Assembly (NCBI GenBank): GCA_019828565.1
Contig: JAHDYR010000022.1
Coordinates: 62,001 to 126,000, forward strand
From: Carpediemonas membranifera BICM
Lineage: Eukaryota; Protista; Fornicata
Reading direction: 5' to 3'
DNA length: 64,000 bases
Shown here in pieces: positions 38,813 to 56,428 of the stretch; positions within the stretch are counted from its first letter, which is position 1; every line of letters starts with the position of its first letter. The notes beneath the pieces are model-generated. The model did no database searches and was not told where the DNA came from. It saw nothing but the letters and a program-made list of their open reading frames with translations. Both the position numbers and the translations under genes were made by a program.

Positions 38813-41800
38813 ATGAAGGGAGAACCAGGGAAGGAAGGCTTCCCTGAGCATTCCAATGATCGAAATAGTAGTGATTTAGATCATACGATCATTGCGCAGC
38901 AGAATGGCACGATTGCTGCGCTATCGATCAAGGTAGACGAGTTGGAGGCCAATCTGGCTGAATCGTACTACGTTATCCAGGCTTTTCACAGCGAACGAGA
39001 AGCATGGGTGAAGTGGAGAACAGAACTGCAAAGCTATACGAAGGAGCTGGAGTCTCAGGCGCGTTCAAACGATGACCTGATCGTCGCTCTGAAGAAGCGC
39101 CTCAGTGCGGTCGAATCAACAGCTACCAGCCAGCAGAAGGACGCGTTAGCCAATATCCCACTTCCTGACACTGCTTCTGGGGAGGAACTCGCACCACCAC
39201 ACGCCCTGGAGCTTGATATGGTCGCCAAATCTTTCAAGGCAGAAGTCGCCCAATTAGAGGCTCAGCTTGCCGCATACAACGATGAAAAGGCTGAGGCTGA
39301 GCGGTACATGCGGGAGAGAGATGTCTTGGCCGCAGAGCTGGGTCGGGTCCGCGAGGCCGTCGATATGGGTGAGCCCCGAGACGGGTGCAAATCAAGTATC
39401 GAGAAGCAGGTCGCAGCATTGCACGCGGAGAAGAAATCACTTGAGGATGAGCTCATCGCGGTGGCTGAGCTGAACAAGGACGTCTGGCAGACACAACATG
39501 ACCTCGAGGGGGAGCTGGTTGGTCTCGCCGCCGAGAAGGCCGAGCTCGAGACGCGCCTCGCTGCGCTCTCCGAGGCATCGCTCCCAGCCGAGCCTGAAAG
39601 TCCGGCTGCATCCGAGCCGGGCACGCCTCGCCACAAGCACAGCAAGGGCCGCAAGGTCAACGCGGCCGAGCTCAAGGCGAAGGTGAACGATCTCCGCCAG
39701 GCCCGCGACGAACTGCGGCAGGCTCTCGACAAGGTCACCTCCGAGAAGGCCGCGCTCGAGACCCAGCTCGCTGAGGCCGAGGCCAGCCGCGAGTCGACCC
39801 AGGCCGAGCTCGAAGCGAAGCTCTCCGCCGTCACCGCCGAGAAGGACGCCCTCGAGACCAACGTCGACGGTCTCGCCGCCGAGAAGGCCGAGCTCGAGAC
39901 GCGCCTCGCTGCGCTCTCCGAGGCATCGCTCCCAGCCGAGCCTGAAAGTCCGGCTGCATCCGAGCCGGGCACGCCTCGCCACAAGCACAGCAAGGGCCGC
40001 AAGGTCAACGCGGCCGAGCTCAAGGCGAAGGTGAACGATCTCCGCCAGGCCCGCGACGAACTGCGGCAGGCTCTCGACAAGGTCATCTCCGAGAAGGCCG
40101 CGCTCGAGACCCAGCTCGCTGCCCAGACTGAGCTCGAGGACAAGCTTGCCGCGCTCGAGACCCAGCTCGCTGAGGCCGAGGCCAGCCGCGAGTCGACCCA
40201 GGCCGAGCTCGAAGCGAAGCTCTCCGCCGTCACCGCCGAGAAGGACGCCCTCGAGACCAACGTCGACGGTCTCGCCGCCGAGAAGGCCGAGCTCGAGACG
40301 CGCCTCGCTGCGCTCTCCGAGGCATCGCTCCCAGCCGAGCCTGAAAGTCCGGCTGCATCCGAGCCGGGCACGCCTCGCCACAAGCACAGCAAGGGCCGCA
40401 AGGTCAACGCGGCCGAGCTCAAGGCGAAGGTGAACGATCTCCGCCAGGCCCGCGACGAACTGCGGCAGGCTCTCGACAAGGTCACCTCCGAGAAGGCCGC
40501 GCTCGAGACCCAGCTCGCTGCCCAGACTGAGCTCGAGGACAAGCTTGCCGCGCTCGAGACCCAGCTCGCTGAGGCCGAGGCCAGCCGCGAGTCGACCCAG
40601 GCCGAGCTCGAAGCGAAGCTCTCCGCCGTCACCGCCGAGAAGGACGCCCTCGAGACCAACGTCGACGGTCTCGCCGCCGAGAAGGCCGAGCTCGAGACGC
40701 GCCTCGCTGCGCTCTCCGAGGCATCGCTCCCAGCCGAGCCTGAAAGTCCGGCTGCATCCGAGCCGGGCACGCCTCGCCACAAGCACAGCAAGGGCCGCAA
40801 GGTCAACGCGGCCGAGCTCAAGGCGAAGGTGAACGATCTCCGCCAGGCCCGCGACGAACTGCGGCAGGCTCTCGACAAGGTCACCTCCGAGAAGGCCGCG
40901 CTCGAGACCCAGCTCGCTGAGGCCGAGGCCAGCCGCGAGTCGACCCAGGCCGAGCTCGAAGCGAAGCTCTCCGCCGTCACCGCCGAGAAGGACGCCCTCG
41001 AGACCAACGTCGACGGTCTCGCCGCCGAGAAGGCCGAGCTCGAGACGCGCCTCGCTGCGCTCTCCGAGGCATCGCTCCCAGCCGAGCCTGAAAGTCCGGC
41101 TGCATCCGAGCCGGGCACGCCTCGCCACAAGCACAGCAAGGGCCGCAAGGTCAACGCGGCCGAGCTCAAGGCGAAGGTGAACGATCTCCGCCAGGCCCGC
41201 GACGAACTGCGGCAGGCTCTCGACAAGGTCATCTCCGAGAAGGCCGCGCTCGAGACCCAGCTCGCTGCCCAGACTGAGCTCGAGGACAAGCTTGCCGCGC
41301 TCGAGACCCAGCTCGCTGAGGCCGAGGCCAGCCGCGAGTCGACCCAGGCCGAGCTCGAAGCGAAGCTCTCCGCCGTCACCGCCGAGAAGGACGCCCTCGA
41401 GACCAACGTCGACGGTCTCGCCGCCGAGAAGGCCGAGCTCGAGACGCGCCTCGCTGCGCTCTCCGAGGCATCGCTCCCAGCCGAGCCTGAAAGTCCGGCT
41501 GCATCCGAGCCGGGCACGCCTCGCCACAAGCACAGCAAGGGCCGCAAGGTCAACGCGGCCGAGCTCAAGGCGAAGGTGAACGATCTCCGCCAGGCCCGCG
41601 ACGAACTGCGGCAGGCTCTCGACAAGGTCACCTCCGAGAAGGCCGCGCTCGAGACCCAGCTCGCTGCCCAGACTGAGCTCGAGGACAAGCTTGCCGCGCT
41701 CGAGACCCAGCTCGCTGAGGCCGAGGCCAGCCGCGAGTCGACCCAGGCCGAGCTCGAAGCGAAGCTCTCCGCCGTCACCGCCGAGAAGGACGCCCTCGAG

Positions 41801-44800
41801 ACCAACGTCGACGGTCTCGCCGCCGAGAAGGCCGAGCTCGAGACGCGCCTCGCTGCGCTCTCCGAGGCATCGCTCCCAGCCGAGCCTGAAAGTCCGGCTG
41901 CATCCGAGCCGGGCACGCCTCGCCACAAGCACAGCAAGGGCCGCAAGGTCAACGCGGCCGAGCTCAAGGCGAAGGTGAACGATCTCCGCCAGGCCCGCGA
42001 CGAACTGCGGCAGGCTCTCGACAAGGTCATCTCCGAGAAGGCCGCGCTCGAGACCCAGCTCGCTGAGGCCGAGGCCAGCTGCGAGTCGACCCAGGCCGAG
42101 CTCGAAGCGAAGCTCTCCGCCGTCACCGCCGAGAAGGACGCCCTCGAGACCAACGTCGACGGTCTCGCCGCCGAGAAGGCCGAGCTCGAGACGCGCCTCG
42201 CTGCGCTCTCCGAGGCATCGCTCCCAGCCGAGCCTGAAAGTCCGGCTGCATCCGAGCCGGGCACGCCTCGCCACAAGCACAGCAAGGGCCGCAAGGTCAA
42301 CGCGGCCGAGCTCAAGGCGAAGGTGAACGATCTCCGCCAGGCCCGCGACGAACTGCGGCAGGCTCTCGACAAGGTCACCTCCGAGAAGGCCGCGCTCGAG
42401 ACCCAGCTCGCTGCCCAGACTGAGCTCGAGGACAAGCTTGCCGCGCTCGAGACCCAGCTCGCTGAGGCCGAGGCCAGCCGCGAGTCGACCCAGGCCGAGC
42501 TCGAAGCGAAGCTCTCCGCCGTCACCGCCGAGAAGGACGCCCTCGAGACCAACGTCGACGGTCTCGCCGCCGAGAAGGCCGAGCTCGAGACGCGCCTCGC
42601 TGCGCTCTCCGAGGCATCGCTCCCAGCCGAGCCTGAAAGTCCGGCTGCATCCGAGCCGGGCACGCCTCGCCACAAGCACAGCAAGGGCCGCAAGGTCAAC
42701 GCGGCCGAGCTCAAGGCGAAGGTGAACGATCTCCGCCAGGCCCGCGACGAACTGCGGCAGGCTCTCGACAAGGTCACCTCCGAGAAGGCCGCGCTCGAGA
42801 CCCAGCTCGCTGCCCAGACTGAGCTCGAGGACAAGCTTGCCGCGCTCGAGGCCCAGCTCGCTGAGGCCGAGGCCAGCCGCGAGTCGACCCAGGCCGAGCT
42901 CGAAGCGAAGCTCTCCGCCGTCACCGCCGAGAAGGACGCCCTCGAGACCAACGTCGACGGTCTCGCCGCCGAGAAGGCCGAGCTCGAGACGCGCCTCGCT
43001 GCGCTCTCCGAGGCATCGCTCCCAGCCGAGCCTGAAAGTCCGGCTGCATCCGAGCCGGGCACGCCTCGCCACAAGCACAGCAAGGGCCGCAAGGTCAACG
43101 CGGCCGAGCTCAAGGCGAAGGTGAACGATCTCCGCCAGGCCCGCGACGAACTGCGGCAGGCTCTCGACAAGGTCACCTCCGAGAAGGCCGCGCTCGAGAC
43201 CCAGCTCGCTGCCCAGACTGAGCTCGAGGACAAGCTTGCCGCGCTCGAGACCCAGCTCGCTGAGGCCGAGGCCAGCCGCGAGTCGACCCAGGCCGAGCTC
43301 GAAGCGAAGCTCTCCGCCGTCACCGCCGAGAAGGACGCCCTCGAGACCAACGTCGACGGTCTCGCCGCCGAGAAGGCCGAGCTCGAGACGCGCCTCGCTG
43401 CGCTCTCCGAGGCATCGCTCCCAGCCGAGCCTGAAAGTCCGGCTGCATCCGAGCCGGGCACGCCTCGCCACAAGCACAGCAAGGGCCGCAAGGTCAACGC
43501 GGCCGAGCTCAAGGCGAAGGTGAACGATCTCCGCCAGGCCCGCGACGAACTGCGGCAGGCTCTCGACAAGGTCACCTCCGAGAAGGCCGCGCTCGAGACC
43601 CAGCTCGCTGCCCAGACTGAGCTCGAGGACAAGCTTGCCGCGCTCGAGACCCAGCTCGCTGAGGCCGAGGCCAGCCGCGAGTCGACCCAGGCCGAGCTCG
43701 AAGCGAAGCTCTCCGCCGTCACCGCCGAGAAGGACGCCCTCGAGACCAACGTCGACGGTCTCGCCGCCGAGAAGGCCGAGCTCGAGACGCGCCTCGCTGC
43801 GCTCTCCGAGGCATCGCTCCCAGCCGAGCCTGAAAGTCCGGCTGCATCCGAGCCGGGCACGCCTCGCCACAAGCACAGCAAGGGCCGCAAGGTCAACGCG
43901 GCCGAGCTCAAGGCGAAGGTGAACGATCTCCGCCAGGCCCGCGACGAACTGCGGCAGGCTCTCGACAAGGTCACCTCCGAGAAGGCCGCGCTCGAGACCC
44001 AGCTCGCTGCCCAGACTGAGCTCGAGGACAAGCTTGCCGCGCTCGAGACCCAGCTCGCTGAGGCCGAGGCCAGCCGCGAGTCGACCCAGGCCGAGCTCGA
44101 AGCGAAGCTCTCCGCCGTCACCGCCGAGAAGGACGCCCTCGAGACCAACGTCGACGGTCTCGCCGCCGAGAAGGCCGAGCTCGAGACGCGCCTCGCTGCG
44201 CTCTCCGAGGCATCGCTCCCAGCCGAGCCTGAAAGTCCGGCTGCATCCGAGCCGGGCACGCCTCGCCACAAGCACAGCAAGGGCCGCAAGGTCAACGCGG
44301 CCGAGCTCAAGGCGAAGGTGAACGATCTCCGCCAGGCCCGCGACGAACTGCGGCAGGCTCTCGACAAGGTCACCTCCGAGAAGGCCGCGCTCGAGACCCA
44401 GCTCGCTGCCCAGACTGAGCTCGAGGACAAGCTTGCCGCGCTCGAGGCCCAGCTCGCTGAGGCCGAGGCCAGCCGCGAGTCGACCCAGGCCGAGCTCGAA
44501 GCGAAGCTCTCCGCCGTCACCGCCGAGAAGGACGCCCTCGAGACCAACGTCGACGGTCTCGCCGCCGAGAAGGCCGAGCTCGAGACGCGCCTCGCTGCGC
44601 TCTCCGAGGCATCGCTCCCAGCCGAGCCTGAAAGTCCGGCTGCATCCGAGCCGGGCACGCCTCGCCACAAGCACAGCAAGGGCCGCAAGGTCAACGCGGC
44701 CGAGCTCAAGGCGAAGGTGAACGATCTCCGCCAGGCCCGCGACGAACTGCGGCAGGCTCTCGACAAGGTCACCTCCGAGAAGGCCGCGCTCGAGACCCAG

Positions 44801-47800
44801 CTCGCTGCCCAGACTGAGCTCGAGGACAAGCTTGCCGCGCTCGAGACCCAGCTCGCTGAGGCCGAGGCCAGCCGCGAGTCGACCCAGGCCGAGCTCGAAG
44901 CGAAGCTCTCCGCCGTCACCGCCGAGAAGGACGCCCTCGAGACCAACGTCGACGGTCTCGCCGCCGAGAAGGCCGAGCTCGAGACGCGCCTCGCTGCGCT
45001 CTCCGAGGCATCGCTCCCAGCCGAGCCTGAAAGTCCGGCTGCATCCGAGCCGGGCACGCCTCGCCACAAGCACAGCAAGGGCCGCAAGGTCAACGCGGCC
45101 GAGCTCAAGGCGAAGGTGAACGATCTCCGCCAGGCCCGCGACGAACTGCGGCAGGCTCTCGACAAGGTCACCTCCGAGAAGGCCGCGCTCGAGACCCAGC
45201 TCGCTGCCCAGACTGAGCTCGAGGACAAGCTTGCCGCGCTCGAGACCCAGCTCGCTGAGGCCGAGGCCAGCCGCGAGTCGACCCAGGCCGAGCTCGAAGC
45301 GAAGCTCTCCGCCGTCACCGCCGAGAAGGACGCCCTCGAGACCAACGTCGACGGTCTCGCCGCCGAGAAGGCCGAGCTCGAGACGCGCCTCGCTGCGCTC
45401 TCCGAGGCATCGCTCCCAGCCGAGCCTGAAAGTCCGGCTGCATCCGAGCCGGGCACGCCTCGCCACAAGCACAGCAAGGGCCGCAAGGTCAACGCGGCCG
45501 AGCTCAAGGCGAAGGTGAACGATCTCCGCCAGGCCCGCGACGAACTGCGGCAGGCTCTCGACAAGGTCACCTCCGAGAAGGCCGCGCTCGAGACCCAGCT
45601 CGCTGCCCAGACTGAGCTCGAGGACAAGCTTGCCGCGCTCGAGACCCAGCTCGCTGAGGCCGAGGCCAGCCGCGAGTCGACCCAGGCCGAGCTCGAAGCG
45701 AAGCTCTCCGCCGTCACCGCCGAGAAGGACGCCCTCGAGACCAACGTCGACGGTCTCGCCGCCGAGAAGGCCGAGCTCGAGACGCGCCTCGCTGCGCTCT
45801 CCGAGGCATCGCTCCCAGCCGAGCCTGAAAGTCCGGCTGCATCCGAGCCGGGCACGCCTCGCCACAAGCACAGCAAGGGCCGCAAGGTCAACGCGGCCGA
45901 GCTCAAGGCGAAGGTGAACGATCTCCGCCAGGCCCGCGACGAACTGCGGCAGGCTCTCGACAAGGTCACCTCCGAGAAGGCCGCGCTCGAGACCCAGCTC
46001 GCTGCCCAGACTGAGCTCGAGGACAAGCTTGCCGCGCTCGAGACCCAGCTCGCTGAGGCCGAGGCCAGCCGCGAGTCGACCCAGGCCGACCTCGAGAAGA
46101 AGCTCGACGCCCTCCGCGCTGAGAAGGATACTCTCGAGACCAAGATCGCCTCGGTCACCTCCGAGAAGGACGCTCTTGAGACCCGCCTTGACGAGACCGC
46201 CAAGGACCGCGACTCGACCCAGGCCGACCTCGAGAAGAAGCTCGACGCCCTCCGCGCTGAGAAGGACGCTCTTGAGACCCGCCTTGACGAGACCACCAAG
46301 GACCGCGACTCGACCCAGGCCGACCTCGAGAAGAAGCTCGACGCCCTCCGCGCTGAGAAGGACGCTCTTGAGACCAAGATCGCCTCGGTCACCTCCGAGA
46401 AGGACGCTCTTGAGACCCGCCTTGACGAGACCGCCAAGGACCGCGACTCGACCCAGACCGACCTCGAGAAGAAGCTCGACGCCCTCCGCGCTGAGAAGGA
46501 CGCTCTTGAGACCCGCCTTGACGAGACCACCAAGGACCGCGACTCGACCCAGGCCGACCTCGAGAAGAAGCTCGACGCCCTCCGCGCTGAGAAGGACGCT
46601 CTTGAGACCCGCCTTGACGAGACCGCCAAGGACCGCGACTCGACCCAGGCCGACCTCGAGAAGAAGCTCGACGCCCTCCGCGCTGAGAAGGACGCTCTTG
46701 AGACCAAGATCGCCTCGGTCACCTCCGAGAAGGACGCTCTTGAGACCCGCCTTGACGAGACCACCAAGGACCGCGACTCGACCCAGGCCGACCTCGAGAA
46801 GAAGCTCGACGCCCTCCGCGCTGAGAAGGACGCTCTTGAGACCCGCCTTGACGAGACCGCCAAGGACCGCGACTCGACCCAGGCCGACCTCGAGAAGAAG
46901 CTCGACGCCCTCCGCGCTGAGAAGGACGCTCTTGAGACCCGCCTTGACGAGACCGCCAAGGACCGCGACTCGACCCAGGCCGACCTCGAGAAGAAGCTCG
47001 ACGCCCTCCGCGCTGAGAAGGATACTCTCGAGACCAAGATCGCCTCGGTCACCTCCGAGAAGGACGCTCTTGAGACCCGCCTTGACGAGACCGCCAAGGA
47101 CCGCGACTCGACCCAGGCCGACCTCGAGAAGAAGCTCGACGCCCTCCGCGCTGAGAAGGACGCTCTTGAGACCCGCCTTGACGAGACCGCCAAGGACCGC
47201 GACTCGACCCAGGCCGACCTCGAGAAGAAGCTCGACGCCCTCCGCGCTGAGAAGGATACTCTCGAGACCCGCCTTGACGAGACCGCCAAGGACCGCGACT
47301 CGACCCAGGCCGACCTCGAGAAGAAGCTCGACGCCCTCCGCGCTGAGAAGGACGCTCTTGAGACCCGCCTTGACGAGACCACCAAGGACCGCGACTCGAC
47401 CCAGGCCGACCTCGAGAAGAAGCTCGACGCCCTCCGCGCTGAGAAGGACGCTCTTGAGACCCGCCTTGACGAGACCGCCAAGGACCGCGACTCGACCCAG
47501 GCCGACCTCGAGAAGAAGCTCGACGCCCTCCGCGCTGAGAAGGACGCTCTTGAGACCCGCCTTGACGAGACCACCAAGGACCGCGACTCGACCCAGGCCG
47601 ACCTCGAGAAGAAGCTCGACGCCCTCCGCGCTGAGAAGGATACTCTCGAGACCAAGATCGCCTCGGTCACCTCCGAGAAGGACGCTCTTGAGACCCACCT
47701 TGACGAGACCACCAAGGACCGCGACTCGACCCAGGCCGACCTCGAGAAGAAGCTCGACGCCCTCCGCGCTGAGAAGGACGCTCTTGAGACCCGCCTTGAC

Positions 47801-49846
47801 GAGACCACCAAGGACCGCGACTCGACCCAGGCCGACCTCGAGAAGAAGCTCGACGCCCTCCGCGCTGAGAAGGACGCTCTTGAGACCCGCCTTGACGAGA
47901 CCGCCAAGGACCGCGACTCGACCCAGGCCGACCTCGAGAAGAAGCTCGACGCCCTCCGCGCTGAGAAGGATACTCTCGAGACCCGCCTTGACGAGACCGC
48001 CAAGGACCGCGACTCGACCCAGGCCGACCTCGAGAAGAAGCTCGACGCCCTCCGCGCTGAGAAGGACGCTCTTGAGACCCGCCTTGACGAGACCACCAAG
48101 GACCGCGACTCGACCCAGGCCGACCTCGAGAAGAAGCTCGACGCCCTCCGCGCTGAGAAGGACGCTCTTGAGACCAAGATCGCCTCGGTCACCTCCGAGA
48201 AGGACGCTCTTGAGACCCGCCTTGACGAGACCACCAAGGACCGCGACTCGACCCAGGCCGACCTCGAGAAGAAGCTCGACGCCCTCCGCGCTGAGAAGGA
48301 TACTCTCGAGACCCGCCTTGACGAGACCGCCAAGGACCGCGACTCGACCCAGGCCGACCTCGAGAAGAAGCTCGACGCCCTCCGCGCTGAGAAGGATACT
48401 CTCGAGACCAAGATCGCCTCGGTCACCTCCGAGAAGGACGCTCTTGAGACCCACCTTGACGAGACCACCAAGGACCGCGACTCGACCCAGGCCGACCTCG
48501 AGAAGAAGCTCGACGCCCTCCGCGCTGAGAAGGACGCTCTTGAGACCCGCCTTGACGAGACCACCAAGGACCGCGACTCGACCCAGGCCGACCTCGAGAA
48601 GAAGCTCGACGCCCTCCGCGCTGAGAAGGACGCTCTTGAGACCCGCCTTGACGAGACCGCCAAGGACCGCGACTCGACCCAGGCCGACCTCGAGAAGAAG
48701 CTCGACGCCCTCCGCGCTGAGAAGGACGCTCTTGAGACCCGCCTTGACGAGACCGCCAAGGACCGCGACTCGACCCAGGCCGACCTCGAGAAGAAGCTCG
48801 ACGCCCTCCGCGCTGAGAAGGATACTCTCGAGACCAAGATCGCCTCGGTCACCTCCGAGAAGGACGCTCTTGAGACCCGCCTTGACGAGACCGCCAAGGA
48901 CCGCGACTCGACCCAGGCCGACCTCGAGAAGAAGCTCGACGCCCTCCGCGCTGAGAAGGACGCTCTTGAGACCAAGATCGCCCAGTCCAGGTCGGAGAAC
49001 CAGACTCTGTCCTCAGCCCGAGCCCTGTTGGAGAAGCAGCTCGAGGAGTCCGTCCAGACGATCGGGGACCTTGAGGCGACCCGCGCCGAGCTCTCATCCT
49101 CTATCGAGTCCATCCGGGCTGAGAATGCAGCGCTGCATGCGAAGCTAGTGGAAGCATCCGATGGACACTCGCTTGAGTTCAAGCTCGCTGTCTCTGAGAA
49201 GCGGCGTCTCGAGAACGTCAACACTGCGCTACACCAGGAAATCGCCAAGGCCAAGGGTATCGCACAGCATATCAATGAGGGCCTAGGCCTGGCCCCACAC
49301 GCATCGGCCGACCTGGCGCTCAGGAGGATCAATGACATGCGTGTGATGATCGTCGGCAAGACTGAGCGGGCCCGCACAGCAGAACCGGTTAGGCCCCCAG
49401 CTGTCACCCCGACTTTACTAGGCCGCACTACGCCCAGGAGACCATCCCTGGTTGATACTAGGGTCCCTGGCCCAGACTCAACCCTAGCTACAACAGTACC
49501 GCCGCGGGCATCGGACTATAGGCCTAGGGCTGGGCGCCAGGACACTGGAAGGGCAGGGGCGTCGTACAGCGACTACTACGCCCCCAGTAAGGGTACCCAT
49601 CCGCCTGCCGGGGATCCAAGACGGAGTATGGATGCCGCAGAGGCCAAGGTCGCCTACCTTGAGGCCGGCCTGGCAGCAATGGCCTCCCGATTCACCAGGA
49701 CTCCTGCATCCAACGGACGGGAGTCACACGCCCGCGGTGCCCGCAGAGAGCCAAGAGATGAGAACACGCACCTTAAGGTCGAGTCGCCTGTGCCAAGACG
49801 GCAGGCCGAGGTCGTTGCCTTCATGTCGAAGCTGCGGTCGAAATGA
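38813..49846 (+). CDS. Giant (3677 aa) repeat-expanded coiled-coil protein, probably cytoskeletal
   Basis: Uninterrupted ORF with unique N- and C-termini and two in-frame repeat arrays. Confidence 0.85.
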   Translation: MKGEPGKEGFPEHSNDRNSSDLDHTIIAQQNGTIAALSIKVDELEANLAESYYVIQAFHSEREAWVKWRTELQSYTKELESQARSNDDLIVALKKRLSAVESTATSQQKDALANIPLPDTASGEELAPPHALELDMVAKSFKAEVAQLEAQLAAYNDEKAEAERYMRERDVLAAELGRVREAVDMGEPRDGCKSSIEKQVAALHAEKKSLEDELIAVAELNKDVWQTQHDLEGELVGLAAEKAELETRLAALSEASLPAEPESPAASEPGTPRHKHSKGRKVNAAELKAKVNDLRQARDELRQALDKVTSEKAALETQLAEAEASRESTQAELEAKLSAVTAEKDALETNVDGLAAEKAELETRLAALSEASLPAEPESPAASEPGTPRHKHSKGRKVNAAELKAKVNDLRQARDELRQALDKVISEKAALETQLAAQTELEDKLAALETQLAEAEASRESTQAELEAKLSAVTAEKDALETNVDGLAAEKAELETRLAALSEASLPAEPESPAASEPGTPRHKHSKGRKVNAAELKAKVNDLRQARDELRQALDKVTSEKAALETQLAAQTELEDKLAALETQLAEAEASRESTQAELEAKLSAVTAEKDALETNVDGLAAEKAELETRLAALSEASLPAEPESPAASEPGTPRHKHSKGRKVNAAELKAKVNDLRQARDELRQALDKVTSEKAALETQLAEAEASRESTQAELEAKLSAVTAEKDALETNVDGLAAEKAELETRLAALSEASLPAEPESPAASEPGTPRHKHSKGRKVNAAELKAKVNDLRQARDELRQALDKVISEKAALETQLAAQTELEDKLAALETQLAEAEASRESTQAELEAKLSAVTAEKDALETNVDGLAAEKAELETRLAALSEASLPAEPESPAASEPGTPRHKHSKGRKVNAAELKAKVNDLRQARDELRQALDKVTSEKAALETQLAAQTELEDKLAALETQLAEAEASRESTQAELEAKLSAVTAEKDALETNVDGLAAEKAELETRLAALSEASLPAEPESPAASEPGTPRHKHSKGRKVNAAELKAKVNDLRQARDELRQALDKVISEKAALETQLAEAEASCESTQAELEAKLSAVTAEKDALETNVDGLAAEKAELETRLAALSEASLPAEPESPAASEPGTPRHKHSKGRKVNAAELKAKVNDLRQARDELRQALDKVTSEKAALETQLAAQTELEDKLAALETQLAEAEASRESTQAELEAKLSAVTAEKDALETNVDGLAAEKAELETRLAALSEASLPAEPESPAASEPGTPRHKHSKGRKVNAAELKAKVNDLRQARDELRQALDKVTSEKAALETQLAAQTELEDKLAALEAQLAEAEASRESTQAELEAKLSAVTAEKDALETNVDGLAAEKAELETRLAALSEASLPAEPESPAASEPGTPRHKHSKGRKVNAAELKAKVNDLRQARDELRQALDKVTSEKAALETQLAAQTELEDKLAALETQLAEAEASRESTQAELEAKLSAVTAEKDALETNVDGLAAEKAELETRLAALSEASLPAEPESPAASEPGTPRHKHSKGRKVNAAELKAKVNDLRQARDELRQALDKVTSEKAALETQLAAQTELEDKLAALETQLAEAEASRESTQAELEAKLSAVTAEKDALETNVDGLAAEKAELETRLAALSEASLPAEPESPAASEPGTPRHKHSKGRKVNAAELKAKVNDLRQARDELRQALDKVTSEKAALETQLAAQTELEDKLAALETQLAEAEASRESTQAELEAKLSAVTAEKDALETNVDGLAAEKAELETRLAALSEASLPAEPESPAASEPGTPRHKHSKGRKVNAAELKAKVNDLRQARDELRQALDKVTSEKAALETQLAAQTELEDKLAALEAQLAEAEASRESTQAELEAKLSAVTAEKDALETNVDGLAAEKAELETRLAALSEASLPAEPESPAASEPGTPRHKHSKGRKVNAAELKAKVNDLRQARDELRQALDKVTSEKAALETQLAAQTELEDKLAALETQLAEAEASRESTQAELEAKLSAVTAEKDALETNVDGLAAEKAELETRLAALSEASLPAEPESPAASEPGTPRHKHSKGRKVNAAELKAKVNDLRQARDELRQALDKVTSEKAALETQLAAQTELEDKLAALETQLAEAEASRESTQAELEAKLSAVTAEKDALETNVDGLAAEKAELETRLAALSEASLPAEPESPAASEPGTPRHKHSKGRKVNAAELKAKVNDLRQARDELRQALDKVTSEKAALETQLAAQTELEDKLAALETQLAEAEASRESTQAELEAKLSAVTAEKDALETNVDGLAAEKAELETRLAALSEASLPAEPESPAASEPGTPRHKHSKGRKVNAAELKAKVNDLRQARDELRQALDKVTSEKAALETQLAAQTELEDKLAALETQLAEAEASRESTQADLEKKLDALRAEKDTLETKIASVTSEKDALETRLDETAKDRDSTQADLEKKLDALRAEKDALETRLDETTKDRDSTQADLEKKLDALRAEKDALETKIASVTSEKDALETRLDETAKDRDSTQTDLEKKLDALRAEKDALETRLDETTKDRDSTQADLEKKLDALRAEKDALETRLDETAKDRDSTQADLEKKLDALRAEKDALETKIASVTSEKDALETRLDETTKDRDSTQADLEKKLDALRAEKDALETRLDETAKDRDSTQADLEKKLDALRAEKDALETRLDETAKDRDSTQADLEKKLDALRAEKDTLETKIASVTSEKDALETRLDETAKDRDSTQADLEKKLDALRAEKDALETRLDETAKDRDSTQADLEKKLDALRAEKDTLETRLDETAKDRDSTQADLEKKLDALRAEKDALETRLDETTKDRDSTQADLEKKLDALRAEKDALETRLDETAKDRDSTQADLEKKLDALRAEKDALETRLDETTKDRDSTQADLEKKLDALRAEKDTLETKIASVTSEKDALETHLDETTKDRDSTQADLEKKLDALRAEKDALETRLDETTKDRDSTQADLEKKLDALRAEKDALETRLDETAKDRDSTQADLEKKLDALRAEKDTLETRLDETAKDRDSTQADLEKKLDALRAEKDALETRLDETTKDRDSTQADLEKKLDALRAEKDALETKIASVTSEKDALETRLDETTKDRDSTQADLEKKLDALRAEKDTLETRLDETAKDRDSTQADLEKKLDALRAEKDTLETKIASVTSEKDALETHLDETTKDRDSTQADLEKKLDALRAEKDALETRLDETTKDRDSTQADLEKKLDALRAEKDALETRLDETAKDRDSTQADLEKKLDALRAEKDALETRLDETAKDRDSTQADLEKKLDALRAEKDTLETKIASVTSEKDALETRLDETAKDRDSTQADLEKKLDALRAEKDALETKIAQSRSENQTLSSARALLEKQLEESVQTIGDLEATRAELSSSIESIRAENAALHAKLVEASDGHSLEFKLAVSEKRRLENVNTALHQEIAKAKGIAQHINEGLGLAPHASADLALRRINDMRVMIVGKTERARTAEPVRPPAVTPTLLGRTTPRRPSLVDTRVPGPDSTLATTVPPRASDYRPRAGRQDTGRAGASYSDYYAPSKGTHPPAGDPRRSMDAAEAKVAYLEAGLAAMASRFTRTPASNGRESHARGARREPRDENTHLKVESPVPRRQAEVVAFMSKLRSK
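39521..46088. repeat. Tandem array A: 17 units of 399 bp (14 copies) or 348 bp (3 copies)
   Basis: The HKHSKGRK-coding motif recurs at spacings 348,399,399,348,399,399,348, then 399 nine times. Confidence 0.95.
46074..48980. repeat. Tandem array B: about 27 units of 96 bp (32 aa) with eight optional 42-bp (KIASVTSEKDALET) inserts
   Basis: RLDET[A/T]KDRDSTQADLEKKLDALRAEKD[A/T]LET repeated. Confidence 0.93.
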
Positions 49847-49949: not shown

Positions 49950-51319
49950 CTACAAGTGCCTGAGCCCAGTCAGCGTGCTTCTATGGGTGCCTACTAGAAG
50001 CTCCTCTCCCTTCATGTCCTTGGAGATGATCTCCCACATGTCCGGGATATGCTCTATATCTAGTTGACCGCTCCCAGATGTATCGCGGGTGAAGAACAGT
50101 GACAGCAGCACTCTTAACACACTACGGGATTCAGGTAACTCCTGTAGTGTCTGCAGTGCCTGTATGAGCTCTGCATAGAGACTACTGCCCATGAACCGGG
50201 GTAGACTCCCCTCCAGGACCAACCTGACGTCGACAAGGGCGGGTTCGAACAAGCTTCTAGCCCACTCTACCGAGACGTCGGCCTCAGTGGCCTTGTTGAT
50301 GGCGATGTTAAGGGTGGCTTCTGTTTCCATTGGTAGGTTGATCCCGAAGTCGGAGGAGTGGAGGAGGAACTTGGCCTGCAGGTCACGGATGCAGAGGAGA
50401 GCGTGGAAGCGGTCACATCTCGCGTGTTCAATAGCTCTACGGACAGCAAATATGAACGCGATGTTCTCTGACGCGTACTCCTGCTTTAGGAAGACGTAGT
50501 AATAGAGGCAGCCAGTCTTTGATCCCAAGACCTGGGCCAGTGTGCGTGGGAATGTCATCACTGGGCTGGTCAGGAGGACTGTGACATTGAGCAGCGGCAG
50601 CGCTGATGATGCGAATGGAACCAGCAGGATTGACGCGAACCCCGCGGCCCTGGCAACCGGGTAGCGGCGTTCTCATCCACGGGCCAGGCGGACAAGACCC
50701 ACATGCAAGCGAGGGAGAGTGTCATGTGGGCTATCTGGCCCTTGACTGGATACTGAAGGATATCTCCTATTGCAACACAAATTCCCCAGAGTATGAATAG
50801 AACAAAGCGGGGGAGGGTCATTAGTATGAACAGGAAGTTGGTAGAGGTCATGTAGGCATAGGACACCCTCTTCCACGGCCAGGAGAACGAGGGCCTGAGG
50901 AAGACGATGGTGTGGAGCAGCATGTTACTGAGAATGAGTGCTGCGACGACGAGGGCGGGAAAAACCGAGTTGCTGAAGGGGATGCGGATGTTCCTGCGGG
51001 CTAGGGTTATAGAGAGAATGGAGTAGAGCAGCGGGCATGCGCTTACGAAGTATGCTGTGTCCACACCGACGAGGACGAGGTATACCGAGAAGAGATGGGG
51101 GTCCTTGCCGGGCCAGAGGACAACGGACTGGACAAAATCCCACATGTCGATCAGGAAGACGAGGAAGAAGCCGAATGATGCGAATATGACTGCCGTTAAG
51201 GCATTATTCCGTATTCTTTTGAACAGCACTAGTGGTGCGGAGATTAAGAAGGCTGTTGCTGCGATTCCTTCAGCTACGAGATAAGTATACTCGGTAACAT
51301 CCTCAATACTTTGCCGCAT
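49950..51319 (-). CDS. Multi-TM (7-8 helices) protein with a C-terminal RGS domain, split by a frame change near 50670
   Basis: The upstream ORF has about 7 hydrophobic helices. The downstream frame is open from about 50672 (ERRYPVARAAGFASILLVPF...) into an RGS box: LAQVL...YYYVFLKQEYASENIAF...INLP...LFEPA...SLPRFMGSSLY. Confidence 0.75.
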
Positions 51320-51456
51320 TCCCAGATGCCAAAGATTGCGCTGATTGGGTAACAATCGCCAATCTTCTCGGAAGAAAGAAGCGCATCTCCCAAAATCTCC
51401 CGAAATCCACGAATCTACGGCACCAACAGACTGCCGAATACGACTTTAATCGTGTG

Positions 51457-53094
51457 CTATACCCGTTGTATCGGGTTCATCTCCTCAACGCCGTCCCCAA
51501 ACTCACACTCACTGGTTGCCCCAGACATGCAGTCGCCGTGGGCAACAGACGGAGGGAGCATCTGACCCCCGCCTAGACCCACATGCTCTCTGGCCCACAG
51601 CTTGGCGGCTCTCCAGCTCTTTGGGAGAAACAGGCCTCCTGCAATGATCAGAGGGGGGATGGCAGGCTCCGTGAACCGAGAGAGCGAGTAAATGATGTTG
51701 TCGTGGTCGAAAAACTGCACGCAACGCTGTAACACGGCGCTGATAACAAGGACGGAGACGACATAAGCTAGGTCAGACGCCTCCTTGACTGCTTCGAGAC
51801 CTGGGGCCCTAGATGACCTCGTCTGAATGGCTAGTAGACCAGCTGTCACAATCAGGGCAGCGATGACAATCTCCATGGGCAGGGTAGCTACAGGGTCAAG
51901 GAAGGAGTCGCACGCGATAGGCCGGACCGGCGATACCCATAGGGTCAAGGGCGCAGGGATAAAGATGGCGATGGCGTGCAGCACGAGGAAGATGGCCTGG
52001 AGGGCCAGGGCCGCCCAGACAAATCCATGGAGGTACATGGGGTTGAAGTAGCTCTGCTTAAACTGCTTGGCCTTCTGGAATATGCGCCACACCCTGAATG
52101 TCTTGGCGGTGAGGGCAGCCAGGGCCATGCTCTCACCGAGGTAGAAGAGCCACGTCTCGGCCCAGCAGCGGGCAGCGGGGAGGCCGGGCCAAGATGTCCC
52201 GATGAGGGCGCTGAGGGCACACAGGATGCAGCCGGTGAGGATGTAGATGGTCATGCTCCTGCCACCACTGGCGAAGGGGGGTGAGCGGCAGCAGATGCAC
52301 TGAGTTATTATACATAGGCAACCCATAAACAGCAATAGTACAGTAAATATGAGCCATAAGAAGCAGACGCCGGAGATCACGGCCGTTGATCCGAAGTATA
52401 GAGCCCCCACGACTTCCCCATCAACGACGATGGGGGCGTATGCACTGTAGTACGTCTGGCTGAACAGTTCGATGGGCCCACTCCACTCCTCTCCTTCCAG
52501 CAGCGCCTTACTGCGCTCGTTGACGCCGCCGTCCGCGTCGTAGTGCTGCATGACAGCGCCGACAGCCAAGACCTCACCCCCGTAGTCGACGGGTACTGTT
52601 GAGACAATGCGGACGAAGTCGTCGCCGACCCTCTGGAATATTGTAGTAACGCCGTTCCAGACGGTGTCCATGTGGACTAGGAAGTCGAGCACTGTCTTGG
52701 GCTCCCTGGTGGCGAGAGTTGCTGCTGTTTCATACCAAGTCGGGTTCAGGAAGGCGTGGTAGTCGGGTACGATGGTGCGGCTGCCTATGGTGAAGTTGGG
52801 CAAGGACATGTTCCTTGGCTCGGTGCATATGATCTTGATGTTGCAGCCGTCGGCCAGAGAGGAGGATGAGTCGGCATATGTCAGCCAGGTTTGGTTGGTG
52901 GTCGCGGAAACAGAGTACCCGCTACCAAATTGCTCATGGAGCATACTTGTTATGCTTTCGAGCGCGCTTCTGCTGCTGGTGGTGGCGAATAACGCATCAA
53001 TGTCGTTCCAAAACCAGTCCGCGCGAACAGCCTCTATCACACATAGAACAACGATTATCGATGCAAATACACGTTGTAACGAAAGACATTGCAT
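51457..53094 (-). CDS. Class C (GABA-B-like) 7TM receptor with an extracellular Cache-like ligand-binding domain
   Basis: Signal peptide; TTIFQRVGDDFVRIVSTV...AVG...ALLEGEEWSG.IELF...YYSAYAPI..DGEVVGALYFG; then 7 TMs with CWAETWLFYLG...LTAKTFRVWRIF and the TM7-end LFLPK. Confidence 0.8.
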   Translation of the reverse strand: MQCLSLQRVFASIIVVLCVIEAVRADWFWNDIDALFATTSSRSALESITSMLHEQFGSGYSVSATTNQTWLTYADSSSSLADGCNIKIICTEPRNMSLPNFTIGSRTIVPDYHAFLNPTWYETAATLATREPKTVLDFLVHMDTVWNGVTTIFQRVGDDFVRIVSTVPVDYGGEVLAVGAVMQHYDADGGVNERSKALLEGEEWSGPIELFSQTYYSAYAPIVVDGEVVGALYFGSTAVISGVCFLWLIFTVLLLFMGCLCIITQCICCRSPPFASGGRSMTIYILTGCILCALSALIGTSWPGLPAARCWAETWLFYLGESMALAALTAKTFRVWRIFQKAKQFKQSYFNPMYLHGFVWAALALQAIFLVLHAIAIFIPAPLTLWVSPVRPIACDSFLDPVATLPMEIVIAALIVTAGLLAIQTRSSRAPGLEAVKEASDLAYVVSVLVISAVLQRCVQFFDHDNIIYSLSRFTEPAIPPLIIAGGLFLPKSWRAAKLWAREHVGLGGGQMLPPSVAHGDCMSGATSECEFGDGVEEMNPIQRV

Positions 53095-53265
53095 CGAATA
53101 GCGCTGGATGCCTTTTCAATGTTCTGTTCGAAATCTCACCTCGGCCAACTTGCCGATGAATCGAATCAAATCAGTCATATCCACATCAATGCAGGTCCAC
53201 CTCATCATCACCGTGTGCTTTACAAGCTCAGATGGGTGCTTCTCGTCAAGCCTATCTGTACAACG

Positions 53266-55818
53266 CTACTCGACCTCAAACGTCACCGGCCGTCCGCCCA
53301 GCCTCCATTGCTGCACCATAAGGTCGGCCGCCCGCTCCCACGCCCTCACCCAGCCCGCCGTGTCAAACAGACCGGGGCCGAGGCGGGCGGCCGTAAGATG
53401 ACTGCGGATGCTGGTGTAGTACGCACTGTCGCGGCAGAGGTGGTTGGCGATCTCCACAAACTTCTCGGGTGACGTGGCAACGAGTTCGCCCATACCCATG
53501 AACTCCAGCATAGATGTGGCAACCCTCGAGGCCATGGTGTTGGCCGGCATCGTCACGACGGGAACACCCGCCCAGAGGATGTCAGCGACGGTGGTGTGCC
53601 CGTTGCAGTGCCACGTGTCGAGGAAGACGTCGACCATGAGGCCCCGTCTTATATGCTCGGCCTTGGGCGCCGTGTCGAGGAAGATCAGACGCTCGGCTTC
53701 CAGGCCCAGGCTCATCGCGAATGCCCTGAGGCGGGCCTCTGCCTCCGGTGGGAAGCGGAGCAGGACCAGTACGGCGTTACGGCGCTCGTTGGCCATGACG
53801 ATTCGGACCCAACGAGTGAAGGAGGCGGGGTCGAACTTGTACACCTGGTTGAAGCAGGCGAAGACGAATGCGTCGACGGGGATGCCGTACACCCGCCGCA
53901 TCTCGGCCCTGGCCTCACCCCGACGCTCACACGCGCCCTGAAGCTCCTCGTCGGTGAAGAGGTCGGCGTGAGCCTGTCTGTGATCTGTCACAAAGTACGA
54001 CTGCGGTAAGAAGACGAGGTTCTCGCTGTAGAGATAGCCCAGGTCGGGTGGTGATGCCGCCCTGTCCGTCACGAGATAGTCAATGAAGGGCGCGCCCGTA
54101 GTGGAGGGGAAGCCGAGCATGCTGGCAATCACTGGAGCAGGCCGCATGGCGCAGATCTCGTTCCTCGTGCCGCGGGTGTACCCGTTGAGATTGACGAGGA
54201 CATGGATGCCGTCCCCGTGTATTGCACGGGCAGCCTCGACGTCAGTCATTGCAGACAAATCCCTGAACCCATCTGAGTCAGCTTCGACCCGCCCACGCAT
54301 GGCAGACCCGTCTGACGGATTGAGGGCGTAGCAGTAGACACTGACTCGGCACCTATCATGGAGGCCAAACACTGACACCATCTGTGTGTGGGCCATCGGA
54401 TGATCGCCGAAATCTGCAGATACGTATCCGATCCTGATTGTCTCAGAATTCAATAAATGGTCGAATCTAAAACCAAGATCGAGCCCCATCGCGTCGACCC
54501 CCGCCTGACACCTGAGGCCGTACGCCCTACTGATCTCTCTCACCTGGGTGTCATCCAGGGGCATTGCCAGAGCATGGAAGGGCTGGACGGAGGGAAGGGG
54601 GGCCATGCGGTTGAACGACACGCGACGGAGCTGGTCACCAATGAGGTTTCTCAGGGTGTGCGATCTCGACTGCCAGCTGTCCCACTGCCCAACACACAGC
54701 TCGGTGTAAAAGAGCGTGGCAAATGCGTCCGTTGACGCCGGGTCGATGTCGAGGGCCCTTGTGTAGTGGACTAGCGCCTTCTCCAGCCGGGAGTGGTCCT
54801 TGTAGAGGTGTCCGACGTTCATATGGGCGTCAAAGAAGGACGGGTTGAGCTGGAGGGCCTTGGTGTAGTACTGTAGCGCCTTACGGTAGTCGCCCCCGTG
54901 TTTAAGGACATTGCCCAGGTTGCTGTATGGGTCGGCGTAGTTGGGGTCTAGCTTCACAGCCTGCAGGTAGGAGGCAACCGCGTCGGGGAGGTTTCCCAGA
55001 GCTCTGTACGCTGTCCCGAGGTTGTTATGGGCGGGGGCGTACGTCGGGTCGAGCTCGATGGCCAGCTTAAGGTGCTCTATGGCCTCTGCGAACCTGTGCT
55101 CGTGGAGACAGAGGCACCCGGCTCTGTCCCGGACGGGCGCAGTGACGGCCTCGGGGAACTTGTTGATAAAGTGGAGGAACGTCGCATAGGCCTGGGCCCC
55201 GGTGCCGGTCTGCTGCAGGGCGTGAGACAGCCCGATGTAGCCCTCCTGGCGGTCGGGGTAGGTGCTAATAACCCGCTTGTACACGGGGATGGCCTTGCTG
55301 GGGTCGCCCATCTCGCAGAATATGAGGCCTAGAGTTACCAAAGGGTCGAGAGTGTTACCCTGTGCTCCACCGACGTTGAATGCGCGGTGGCAAACGTCTG
55401 CAGCCTTGACAAAGTCATGCAGCTGACGGTAAACATAAGCCAAGCTCATGAGAGAGGGTAGGGACTCCTCAAGCTCCAGGGCCTTGACATGGAACTCCTC
55501 GGCCCTCCTGAGATCACCCTGCTCGAGGTAGAGATTCGCTATGTTGACGTACGGTGTGGCACTGGAGGGATCGCAGGAGATTGCTGTCTGATACGATCGT
55601 AGAGCCAGCTGGAACTCACTGAGCGACCGGTAGATGTTCCCCATAGTATTTTGGGTCTCAGAGTTCGTAGGATCAATGGAAATAGACTTTTCGCAGACCA
55701 TGAGCGCGTTGACAAAGTCTCCCCGTTGGTACAGGTCGCAGGCCTCTTGATTCAGCGCGTCCGCCTGTGCAACGACCAATAAATCGCAAAGTCTGTTGCT
55801 GCATGGTGTTTCCAACAT
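53266..55818 (-). CDS. OGT: O-GlcNAc transferase (TPR repeats plus GT41 catalytic domain)
   Basis: TPRs (HNNLG, YSNLGN), PSVQPFHAL, RIGYVSADFGDHP, LVNLNGYTRG, FNQVYK and NGHTT..DILWAGVPVVT. Confidence 0.92.
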   Translation of the reverse strand: MLETPCSNRLCDLLVVAQADALNQEACDLYQRGDFVNALMVCEKSISIDPTNSETQNTMGNIYRSLSEFQLALRSYQTAISCDPSSATPYVNIANLYLEQGDLRRAEEFHVKALELEESLPSLMSLAYVYRQLHDFVKAADVCHRAFNVGGAQGNTLDPLVTLGLIFCEMGDPSKAIPVYKRVISTYPDRQEGYIGLSHALQQTGTGAQAYATFLHFINKFPEAVTAPVRDRAGCLCLHEHRFAEAIEHLKLAIELDPTYAPAHNNLGTAYRALGNLPDAVASYLQAVKLDPNYADPYSNLGNVLKHGGDYRKALQYYTKALQLNPSFFDAHMNVGHLYKDHSRLEKALVHYTRALDIDPASTDAFATLFYTELCVGQWDSWQSRSHTLRNLIGDQLRRVSFNRMAPLPSVQPFHALAMPLDDTQVREISRAYGLRCQAGVDAMGLDLGFRFDHLLNSETIRIGYVSADFGDHPMAHTQMVSVFGLHDRCRVSVYCYALNPSDGSAMRGRVEADSDGFRDLSAMTDVEAARAIHGDGIHVLVNLNGYTRGTRNEICAMRPAPVIASMLGFPSTTGAPFIDYLVTDRAASPPDLGYLYSENLVFLPQSYFVTDHRQAHADLFTDEELQGACERRGEARAEMRRVYGIPVDAFVFACFNQVYKFDPASFTRWVRIVMANERRNAVLVLLRFPPEAEARLRAFAMSLGLEAERLIFLDTAPKAEHIRRGLMVDVFLDTWHCNGHTTVADILWAGVPVVTMPANTMASRVATSMLEFMGMGELVATSPEKFVEIANHLCRDSAYYTSIRSHLTAARLGPGLFDTAGWVRAWERAADLMVQQWRLGGRPVTFEVE

Positions 55819-56428
55819 CTCCCCGTTCCAGGAAGATTGTCGTGGTGATTGAAGCGATCTGACAAAAACTGCACCGCCGCGATCACCCCCCAATCACGGC
55901 GATCCATGTGGTTTTAACCCTCGCCTTGAGTCTTCTGGAGTGTTTCGTTACCTTGTGAGTGCTCAGAGTCGCTGGCATGTCAGGGCCGCCGGTCCGAGCG
56001 ATTTACCGCATGTCAAGGATGGTCAACGACCAAATCTATCGATATATCTGATATACGAAAAACCGAGGACGCTTGGTTGATCATACGGCGGAATGTCGAC
56101 ACTCTACCCACTGGATCCGGTGGGCCATCCCTTGTTTCACAGTTCTGACTTCGCCGACATTTGACAGAGAAGTCGAGGTGGTTGGCTCTGGGAGCATGGC
56201 TATGATCTGGTTATGAACTTGTGAAATGGTCTTTCTGAGGTAGTCGGGTCGCCGTTTCTCTGACCGCGGTGGGGGTGTCGCAAGGCTTTGGATGAAGCTG
56301 CCGATAAGTGCCCCGTAAACACTATACATAACTGTACATGACGATCATCGATGGCCCTTGACCCCCGTCGATGTGTACTTGGCGGATCGATCAGTGTCGA
56401 ATTTGACATACAACGACGAAGCCGCAAT

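Follow-up and report, generated by a model that had tools for sequence, protein, structure and literature searches.

A bacterial-type Cache sensor domain fused directly to a class C receptor core in the metamonad Carpediemonas membranifera

For the G-protein-coupled receptors (GPCRs) of protists, ligands are almost entirely unknown. A protist receptor whose ectodomain belongs to a family with ligand-bound structures and a verified binding motif therefore raises the question of what kind of protein it is, where its sensor came from and what it might detect. Carpediemonas membranifera is a free-living, anaerobic, bacterivorous metamonad. We analysed a stretch of 64,000 nucleotides of its genome (the window; contig JAHDYR010000022.1, positions 62,001 to 126,000 of the forward strand), in which a preliminary description had proposed, at 51457-53094, a bacterial chemoreceptor-type Cache domain fused to a GABA-B-like GPCR. 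The host assembly (GCA_019828565.1; label G000) comprises 24,237,836 bases in 69 contigs, against published values of 24.2 Mb, 69 contigs and 57.1% GC (PMC8516963), and the contig that carries the gene is eukaryotic and 218.9 kb long. The gene encodes a single Cache (sCache) domain of the type found in bacterial formate sensors, which runs directly into a class C seven-transmembrane (7TM) core. We explain it best, with modest confidence, as a functional chemosensory Cache-class C receptor whose formate-type sensor was acquired laterally.

Pfam matches to Cache families and to the class C 7TM family (7tm_3) lie in one open reading frame (ORF), all above the curated cut-offs, and the same combination recurs in a paralogue and in a protein of a second organism (P0003), so that the proposed fusion is borne out. 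Neither the Cache nor the 7TM match could plausibly be due to chance. Within the ectodomain, Cache_3-Cache_2 matches residues 118-236 (E 8.1e-15, 55.3 bits; profile positions 69-182 of 299, which amounts to one module) and sCache_3_3 matches residues 146-236 (E 4.8e-10, 40.2 bits; profile positions 17-95 of 107). The ectodomain segment to which attention had first been drawn, about 52390-52700, corresponds to residues 131-235 and lies inside these Cache matches. The 7tm_3 match covers residues 248-455 (E 1.4e-14, 54.8 bits against a cut-off of 33.5), while a search of NCBIfam with the receptor protein gave no match. With the final strand of Cache ending at residue 236 and the first transmembrane helix (TM1) starting at about residue 240, about four residues lie between the two; neither a Cys-rich segment nor an EGF match was found between Cache and TM1 by Pfam, in the model or in the hydropathy scan. 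The features of the gene are as follows.

51457..53094, minus strand: complete, intronless coding sequence of the Cache-class C receptor; a single uninterrupted ORF of 545 codons plus stop.
53020..53094, minus strand: signal peptide, predicted cleavable, residues 1-25 (sequence reading and hydropathy scan).
52387..53019, minus strand: extracellular sCache domain, residues 26-236 (Pfam, AlphaFold2 (AF2) model, Foldseek, VIA).
51595..52377, minus strand: class C (7tm_3) seven-helix core, residues 240-500 (Pfam, PDB sequence matches, hydropathy).
52165-52167, minus strand: TM3 cysteine C310, conserved in all three proteins.
52078..52107, minus strand: cytoplasmic end of TM3 with the basic pair K331/R334, residues 330-339 (alignment to mGluR4/7).
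51910-51912, minus strand: cysteine C395 of extracellular loop 2 (ECL2), conserved in all three proteins.
51619..51624, minus strand: Pro-Lys of TM7, P491-K492, within an LxPKxx motif (sequence reading).
51460..51594, minus strand: cytoplasmic tail, residues 501-545 (no Pfam match; poorly conserved).

Seven helices were placed between residues 237 and 504 by the hydropathy scan together with the secondary structure of a full-length AF2 model. This model was computed from an alignment of the two paralogues only and is of low confidence (predicted local distance difference test, pLDDT, of 33), and only its secondary-structure string was used. With a signal peptide upstream of the helices, the N-terminus would lie outside the cell. 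Class C receptors are marked by the TM3-ECL2 cysteines, a Lys/Arg pair in TM3 and a Pro-Lys in TM7 (PMC3727952), the latter being part of the LxPKxx motif named for this class (PMC3727952, PMC11437087). Both K331/R334 and P491-K492 are kept in the paralogue and in P0003. The stretch at 52078-52107, previously taken for the class C hallmark, indeed lies inside the 7tm_3 match and aligns to the end of TM3 of mGluR4 and mGluR7. The attribution to GABA-B receptors did not hold up. As judged from PDB sequence matches of the 7TM part, the transmembrane chains of mGluR4/7 score slightly better (E about 1e-4) than GABA-B (3e-3), and we therefore assign the core to class C in general, not to GABA-B in particular. 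The cytoplasmic tail varies, with 26% identity and a nonsynonymous divergence (dN) of 0.85 between the paralogues.

The public gene model of the locus (P0001) has 495 residues and begins at Met51. Missing from it are the signal peptide and the beginning of the N-terminal helix of the Cache domain (52945-53094, minus strand), a part whose equivalent the public model of the paralogue includes. We take Met1 as the probable start, because a leader with a cleavage site follows the first Met (hydrophobic core at residues 9-20, small residues at -3 and -1, predicted cut before D26), because the paralogue has an equivalent leader and because residues 24-50 are kept in both copies. One small public sequencing run of 2017 contains 95% of the sampled words. 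Its contigs tile 51360-54209 without joints, one of them bridging the junction between Cache and 7TM, and they leave a gap at the 101-bp spacer before the downstream gene. These data bear on whether the fusion might be an artefact of chimeric assembly or of bacterial contamination, or the gene might be dead. The truncated public model and the lack of proof of transcription would agree with such a reading, which is nonetheless already effectively refuted. The gene sits on a long eukaryotic contig with genes for an O-GlcNAc-transferase and a regulator of G-protein signalling (RGS) adjoining, its frame is uninterrupted, an independent contig spans the junction and the ratio of nonsynonymous to synonymous substitutions (dN/dS) is about 0.2. 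Moreover, a paralogue is present on a second contig and an orthologue-like gene lies among eukaryotic genes in another assembly. The receptor ORF is colinear with both in alignments.

We then turn to the nature of the ectodomain. No Venus-flytrap domain is present in the receptor; in accordance with the preliminary description, the ectodomain is a Cache domain with a PAS-like fold by both Pfam and the AF2 model, in which a long N-terminal helix is followed by one alpha/beta PAS-like core. Formate sensors are recognised by a partial Cache_3-Cache_2 match that covers the distal module only, or by a full sCache_3_3 match (PMC11804620), and the receptor ectodomain carries this single-module signature above the Pfam cut-offs. 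The sequence pattern of bacterial chemoreceptors cited in the preliminary description agrees almost letter for letter with the consensus of our 73 aligned bacterial homologues. The ectodomain model, computed from a 76-sequence alignment, reached a pLDDT of 82.5 and a predicted template modelling score (pTM) of 0.82. In a Foldseek search of the PDB its best matches were 8py0 and 8py1 (E about 2e-8), followed by GAF/PAS-type domains (E 9e-5 and weaker). These two entries are the formate-bound sensors of two chemoreceptors (PMC11804620). Re-alignment with VIA gave Z-scores of 16.9 for 8py0_B (154/157 residues, root mean square deviation 3.0) and 15.9 for 8py1, the next folds being CitA, DcuS, WalK and DctB at Z of about 10; VIA-wide, over 48,161 PDB representatives, returned 8py0 (Z 16.9), 8py1 (Z 15.1) and then values of about 10. 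The closest structures in the ESM Atlas all fall into Cache_3-Cache_2 / sCache_3_3 clusters that are 96-100% bacterial. Several elements are specific to the eukaryotic proteins or kept among them, namely a loop at about residues 112-129 (from alignment occupancy) and a Cys pair, C84 and C90, found in all three; three N-x-S/T sites are present in the receptor ectodomain. A homodimer prediction for the ectodomain scored 0.00, but was run without an alignment and counts neither way on dimerisation.

The distribution of the fusion was determined with a profile of the two paralogues, searched exhaustively with HMMER against 1.84 billion protein cluster representatives. Within C. membranifera, the Cache family is confined to the two receptor genes. 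The one paralogue, on contig C32, is 65% identical and of the same architecture, and its encoded protein equals an NCBI C. membranifera protein letter for letter. Beyond the genome, P0003 (584 residues) was the sole further match to both halves, at E 3.7e-66 and with 29% identity in a colinear alignment over residues 10-495, whereas the other 116 matches cover the Cache or the 7TM part alone, at E 1e-8 or weaker. Among those scanned or looked up, the Cache-only matches are bacterial chemoreceptors (methyl-accepting chemotaxis proteins, MCPs) and SpoIIE phosphatase, and the 7TM-only matches are class C receptors, of which some have Peripla_BP_6 ectodomains and two are named as Blastocladiella proteins. 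P0003 is encoded on a 24.7-kb contig, PPCM01000652.1, of the unannotated assembly GCA_002919055.1, among eukaryotic genes. Its neighbours resemble C. membranifera proteins to varying degrees (a 1198-residue protein without Pfam match 43% over its full length, peptidase T 45%, CCDC39 30%), which marks its organism as a genuine though distant relative of Carpediemonas.

The peptidase T just mentioned is of bacterial type (M20B) and merits a remark of its own. It occurs in the P0003 organism (L003:500-2047, plus strand), in C. membranifera (C26:887237-888457; 45%) and in Kipferlia bialata (44%), and otherwise the enzyme matches bacteria at 43-48%. It looks like an older lateral acquisition common to these flagellates.

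Separate phylogenies of the Cache and 7TM parts, as the preliminary description had suggested, each recovered the three eukaryotic proteins as one clade (SH-like approximate likelihood ratio support of 97 and 98, respectively). Because the clade is supported in both trees, the fusion arose once, before the two organisms diverged. The gene is under purifying selection, with dN/dS values between the paralogues of about 0.17 (Cache core) and about 0.20 (7TM part), rough figures given that dS is near saturation. The third-codon-position GC content is 0.73 in both receptor halves and 0.75 in the neighbouring O-GlcNAc-transferase gene; by these measures the gene is old and ameliorated. The nearest bacterial Cache matches come from several phyla and comprise 58 double-module and 4 single-module receptors. 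Since every search made places this Cache family, apart from the eukaryotic receptors, in bacteria, lateral acquisition from bacteria, as proposed at the outset, is the economical reading, and we regard it as highly probable. Cache domains in eukaryotes are also generally attributed to horizontal transfer (PMC4822843). It would be very improbable, by comparison, that eukaryotes inherited the module from ancient times and that nearly all of them have since lost it. The tree does not put the eukaryotic clade inside a particular bacterial group and the composition is fully host-like, both of which would fit such an inheritance. Against it stand the occurrence of only three eukaryotic proteins, in two related genomes, among the 1.84 billion representatives, the bacterial origin of all other Cache-type matches scanned or looked up and of nearly all members of the nearest Atlas clusters, and the general ascription of eukaryotic Cache domains to transfer.

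Four further class C receptors were found in the genome, of 919-984 residues and with SBP_bac_1/SBP_bac_8 ectodomains instead of ANF/Peripla_BP_6 flytraps. All six class C receptors of C. membranifera hence carry bacterial-type sensor modules. The four loci (L014-L017) are the following.

C8:766423-767148: SBP-type class C receptor, L014.
C4:756806-757546: SBP-type class C receptor, L015.
C13:234595-235314: SBP-type class C receptor, L016.
C68:294896-295618: SBP-type class C receptor, L017.

A recent ectodomain swap on one of these same-genome receptors was considered as a source of the fusion and rejected, as the two groups of 7TM cores form separate clades and are barely similar (BLAST E 1e-3 to 0.6 between SBP-type and Cache-type cores).

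With the family assignment at hand, the potential binding site could be read from an HMMER alignment to 8py0_A, with residue roles taken from the formate-sensor study (PMC11804620). Chain numbers of 8py0_A equal the numbers of that paper minus 8. The pocket and its residues are listed here.

52396..52644, minus strand: predicted ligand pocket.
T151, equivalent to T100 of 8py0: formate contact.
R162, equivalent to R111 of 8py0: formate contact.
Y219, equivalent to Y160 of 8py0: formate contact.
Y233, equivalent to F175 of 8py0: aromatic pocket floor.
S165, equivalent to T145 of PacF: modulation of affinity.
A180, equivalent to T158 of PacF: modulation of affinity.

The Thr/Arg/Tyr contact triad is invariant, both in the bacterial (73/73) and in the eukaryotic (3/3) sequences aligned. 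At the pocket floor, 37 of the 73 bacteria have Tyr, as does the receptor, and 36 have Phe. The two modulatory positions are S and A in the receptor, S and S in the paralogue, and T and S in P0003; in the published set, Thr is 98% conserved at both (PMC11804620). In PacF, the T145A substitution lowers the affinity for formate five-fold and T158A raises it six-fold (PMC11804620). Since neither substitution abolishes binding, positions 165 and 180 are modulatory and not essential, and because T158A raises affinity, A180 is compatible with formate binding. Judging from the conservation of the pocket, the ligand may be formate or a similarly small carboxylate, and we give formate itself an even chance.

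Several observations weigh against a functional, formate-type receptor. The receptor has S165 and A180 where Thr makes up 96-99% of the residues in the 73 aligned bacteria, and the eukaryotic proteins carry insertions of 2 and of 18-24 residues near the Cache core, which could reshape a tight, size-excluding pocket. The alignment behind the ectodomain model is dominated by the bacterial family, so that the likeness to 8py0 is partly inherited from it. A quick Cache tree gives the eukaryotic clade a long branch and does not place the bacterial donor. The 7tm_3 match of the receptor ends at profile position 213 of 251, while that of the paralogue (65.7 bits) extends over positions 12-251. Lastly, the 2017 run is an independent confirmation of the sequence and not proof of transcription, because its library type is only guessed to be RNA. 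The substitutions, the insertions and the long branch would also suit a different outcome, namely that the same fusion receptor has drifted in its pocket towards another ligand (acetate, lactate, bicarbonate or another small anion), or that its Cache domain now serves for dimerisation independently of any ligand. As the specificity of the bacterial formate sensors derives from a very tight pocket (PMC11804620), small changes could matter here. We nevertheless consider such drift unlikely, although it is the most serious of the alternatives: the three formate-contacting residues of both crystal structures are unchanged, half of the bacterial family likewise has Tyr at the floor, PacF T158A still binds formate and does so more tightly, and no other part of the protein is as well conserved between the paralogues as the Cache core, at 75% identity.

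Among known systems, the bacterial formate sensors (PacF, Atu0526, R3, which is 8py1, and R6, which is 8py0; PMC11804620) have the Pfam families and fold of its ectodomain, the Thr/Arg/Tyr contacts and an aromatic floor, and in both the last strand passes directly into a membrane helix. They differ in output, where HAMP and MCP signalling domains take the place of the eukaryotic 7TM core, and at the N-terminus, where a membrane helix replaces the predicted cleavable signal peptide. The receptor is further set apart by extra loops, the conserved Cys pair, N-glycosylation sites and Ser/Ala at the two conserved Thr positions. GPR158 (mGlyR) and GPR179 resemble it in the class C 7TM, in a Cache-fold ectodomain that replaces the Venus flytrap, in the TM7 LxPKxx motif and in the presence of RGS proteins in the system. 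In these receptors, however, an EGF-like cysteine-rich domain links Cache to TM1 (PMC11437087), as opposed to the gap of about four residues described above. Neither the PDB sequence search nor the exhaustive HMMER search gave a sequence match to GPR158/179, and both proteins were absent among the 50 best matches listed by Foldseek, VIA and VIA-wide for the ectodomain model. Given this lack of sequence similarity, and since the structural lists are filled by bacterial sensors, the receptor is of independent origin and convergent with GPR158/179, in support of the convergence suggested earlier.

A Cache_1 domain on a class C receptor of the diatom Thalassiosira pseudonana (TP_7830) was reported in 2012 and 2013 (PMC3251606; PMC3727952 Fig. 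4), and an ESM Atlas diatom cluster combines 7tm_3 with MCP-like_PDC_1. The diatom receptors are likewise protist class C proteins with a bacterial-type ectodomain of the Cache superfamily. They differ in having a double Cache of dCache_1/PDC type within proteins of about 730 residues and in lacking a ligand prediction, and no full-length similarity to them was found by exhaustive HMMER; the C. membranifera receptor arose independently of them. With mGluR, GABA-B, CaSR and the protist or fungal receptors that combine SBP_bac_1 or Peripla_BP_6 with 7tm_3, it has in common the 7TM hallmarks and the principle of a bacterial solute-sensing module, but its ectodomain is a PAS-like Cache and not a bilobed flytrap of the periplasmic-binding-protein type. 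In the literature, a 2025 survey limited to opisthokonts reports no Cache on non-metazoan GPCRs (PMC12716839), a 2016 Cache census lists no GPCR context (PMC4822843), and the formate-sensor study, which drew its homologues from RefSeq, reports bacterial phyla only (PMC11804620). Our literature search found no paper that links Cache_3-Cache_2/sCache_3_3 with a GPCR or Carpediemonas with GPCR signalling. The claim that the architecture is undescribed thus stands in part: a Cache domain on a class C 7TM is known from GPR158/179 and the diatom, while the formate-sensor-type Cache family on such a core, its direct junction to TM1, the ligand prediction and the host in Metamonada appear to be new.

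How the receptor might signal is less readily answered. Nine RGS loci are present in the C. membranifera genome, as are two true genes for G-alpha (E 1e-132 and 8e-103), and coupling of the receptor to a heterotrimeric G protein is rather probable. Upstream on the same strand, 171 bp from the receptor start codon, lies a gene for an 875-residue O-GlcNAc-transferase of SPY/SEC-like type with TPR repeats and a GT41 domain (53266-55893, minus strand; Glyco_transf_41, E 3e-127), and one public contig spans both genes. On the other side, 101 bp downstream and again on the same strand, a multi-TM gene with an RGS domain (49950-51355, minus strand) is split over two frames. An ORF of 261 codons (50570-51355) contains about six hydrophobic helices, and one of 203 codons (49950-50561) contains the RGS domain (Pfam 4.6e-7). 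Only in the RGS frame can a seventh hydrophobic stretch be read, from about 50645, with the frames overlapping at about 50570-50674. An assembly error, a pseudogene or a recoding site might account for the break. GT/GC-AG excisions that restore the frame can be listed, none of them compelling, and canonical short introns fit poorly; pairing a GTGGGT donor at 50702 with the acceptor at 50650 would remove the TM6-TM7 loop. The break was not located by tblastn with the paralogous RGS proteins, which are too diverged, and the contigs of the public runs show no spliced joint across it. Six other RGS loci of the genome have open frames of 468-530 residues.

In the contigs of two small public runs over this TM-RGS gene, a single base of the window is missing, at position 50809 in one run and at 50815 in the other, and one public contig carries 24 unmatched letters past 51346, on the 5' side of the gene. 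Elsewhere, positions 40000-48000 of the window are distinct from the rest, with a GC content of 0.69 and an AT skew of +0.33.

The adjoining RGS gene invites the thought that the receptor does not activate a G protein in the classical way and instead acts as a ligand-regulated RGS scaffold like GPR158/mGlyR, possibly with this very neighbour, or through another effector. GPR158 and GPR179, the only characterised Cache-bearing class C receptors, work through RGS7-G-beta-5 (PMC11437087), and the cytoplasmic tail of our receptor is short and unconserved. We judge this output to be quite improbable. No RGS locus is present on the contig of the paralogue and none was seen beside P0003, the adjoining gene has a frame break, and the hallmarks of class C activation (TM3 Lys/Arg, TM7 Pro-Lys, TM3-ECL2 cysteines) are retained. 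A scaffold role would bear on output alone and leaves room for sensing as in the explanation that we prefer.

For a chemosensory receptor with a captured formate-type sensor, the following course of events may be envisaged. The Cache module would have come from bacteria before C. membranifera split from the related flagellate; fusion to a class C 7TM of eukaryotic origin and duplication would have followed. After cleavage of the signal peptide, a single Cache domain would stand outside the cell and run directly into TM1. Formate or a small carboxylate could be held there by a salt bridge to the Arg and by hydrogen bonds to the Thr and Tyr. As the last beta-strand ends only about four residues before TM1, binding would be expected to shift TM1 and a probable dimer. 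The altered 7TM state would then act on a heterotrimeric G-alpha, which RGS proteins would switch off.

No match to pyruvate formate-lyase (PF02901) or to formate/nitrite transporters of the FocA type (PF01226) was found in the whole C. membranifera genome, and formate would thus be an external cue. In cultures of C. frisia, co-enriched Firmicutes are inferred to excrete formate, which accumulates together with hydrogen once growth of the flagellate stops (PMC5437931). An anaerobic bacterivore could in this way sense what bacteria release by fermentation, and use it to seek out prey or partners or else to move away from product-inhibited places; attraction and escape are both plausible. That a eukaryotic GPCR detects formate via a captured bacterial sensor, and so obtains a direct read-out of fermentation for prey finding or syntrophic positioning, is a proposal we make tentatively, at somewhat less than even odds. 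It is directly testable on a small soluble domain.

If correct, this would be the first class C GPCR of a protist for which a small-molecule ligand is defined, and nature's own proof that a Cache domain of bacterial type can drive a 7TM core without a linker domain. Gating of a class C 7TM by Cache via a four-residue junction would bear on Cache signalling in GPR158/179 and would offer a compact scaffold for engineered biosensors. It would also mean that sensing modules pass between bacterial chemotaxis and eukaryotic GPCRs and are still functional thereafter. Together with the four SBP_bac_1-type receptors, the Cache receptor also shows that the whole class C repertoire of this lineage is built on bacterial-type solute sensors. 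For anaerobic bacterivores in sediments, where the exchange of formate and hydrogen governs growth, the receptor would provide a molecular handle on how prey and partners are found.

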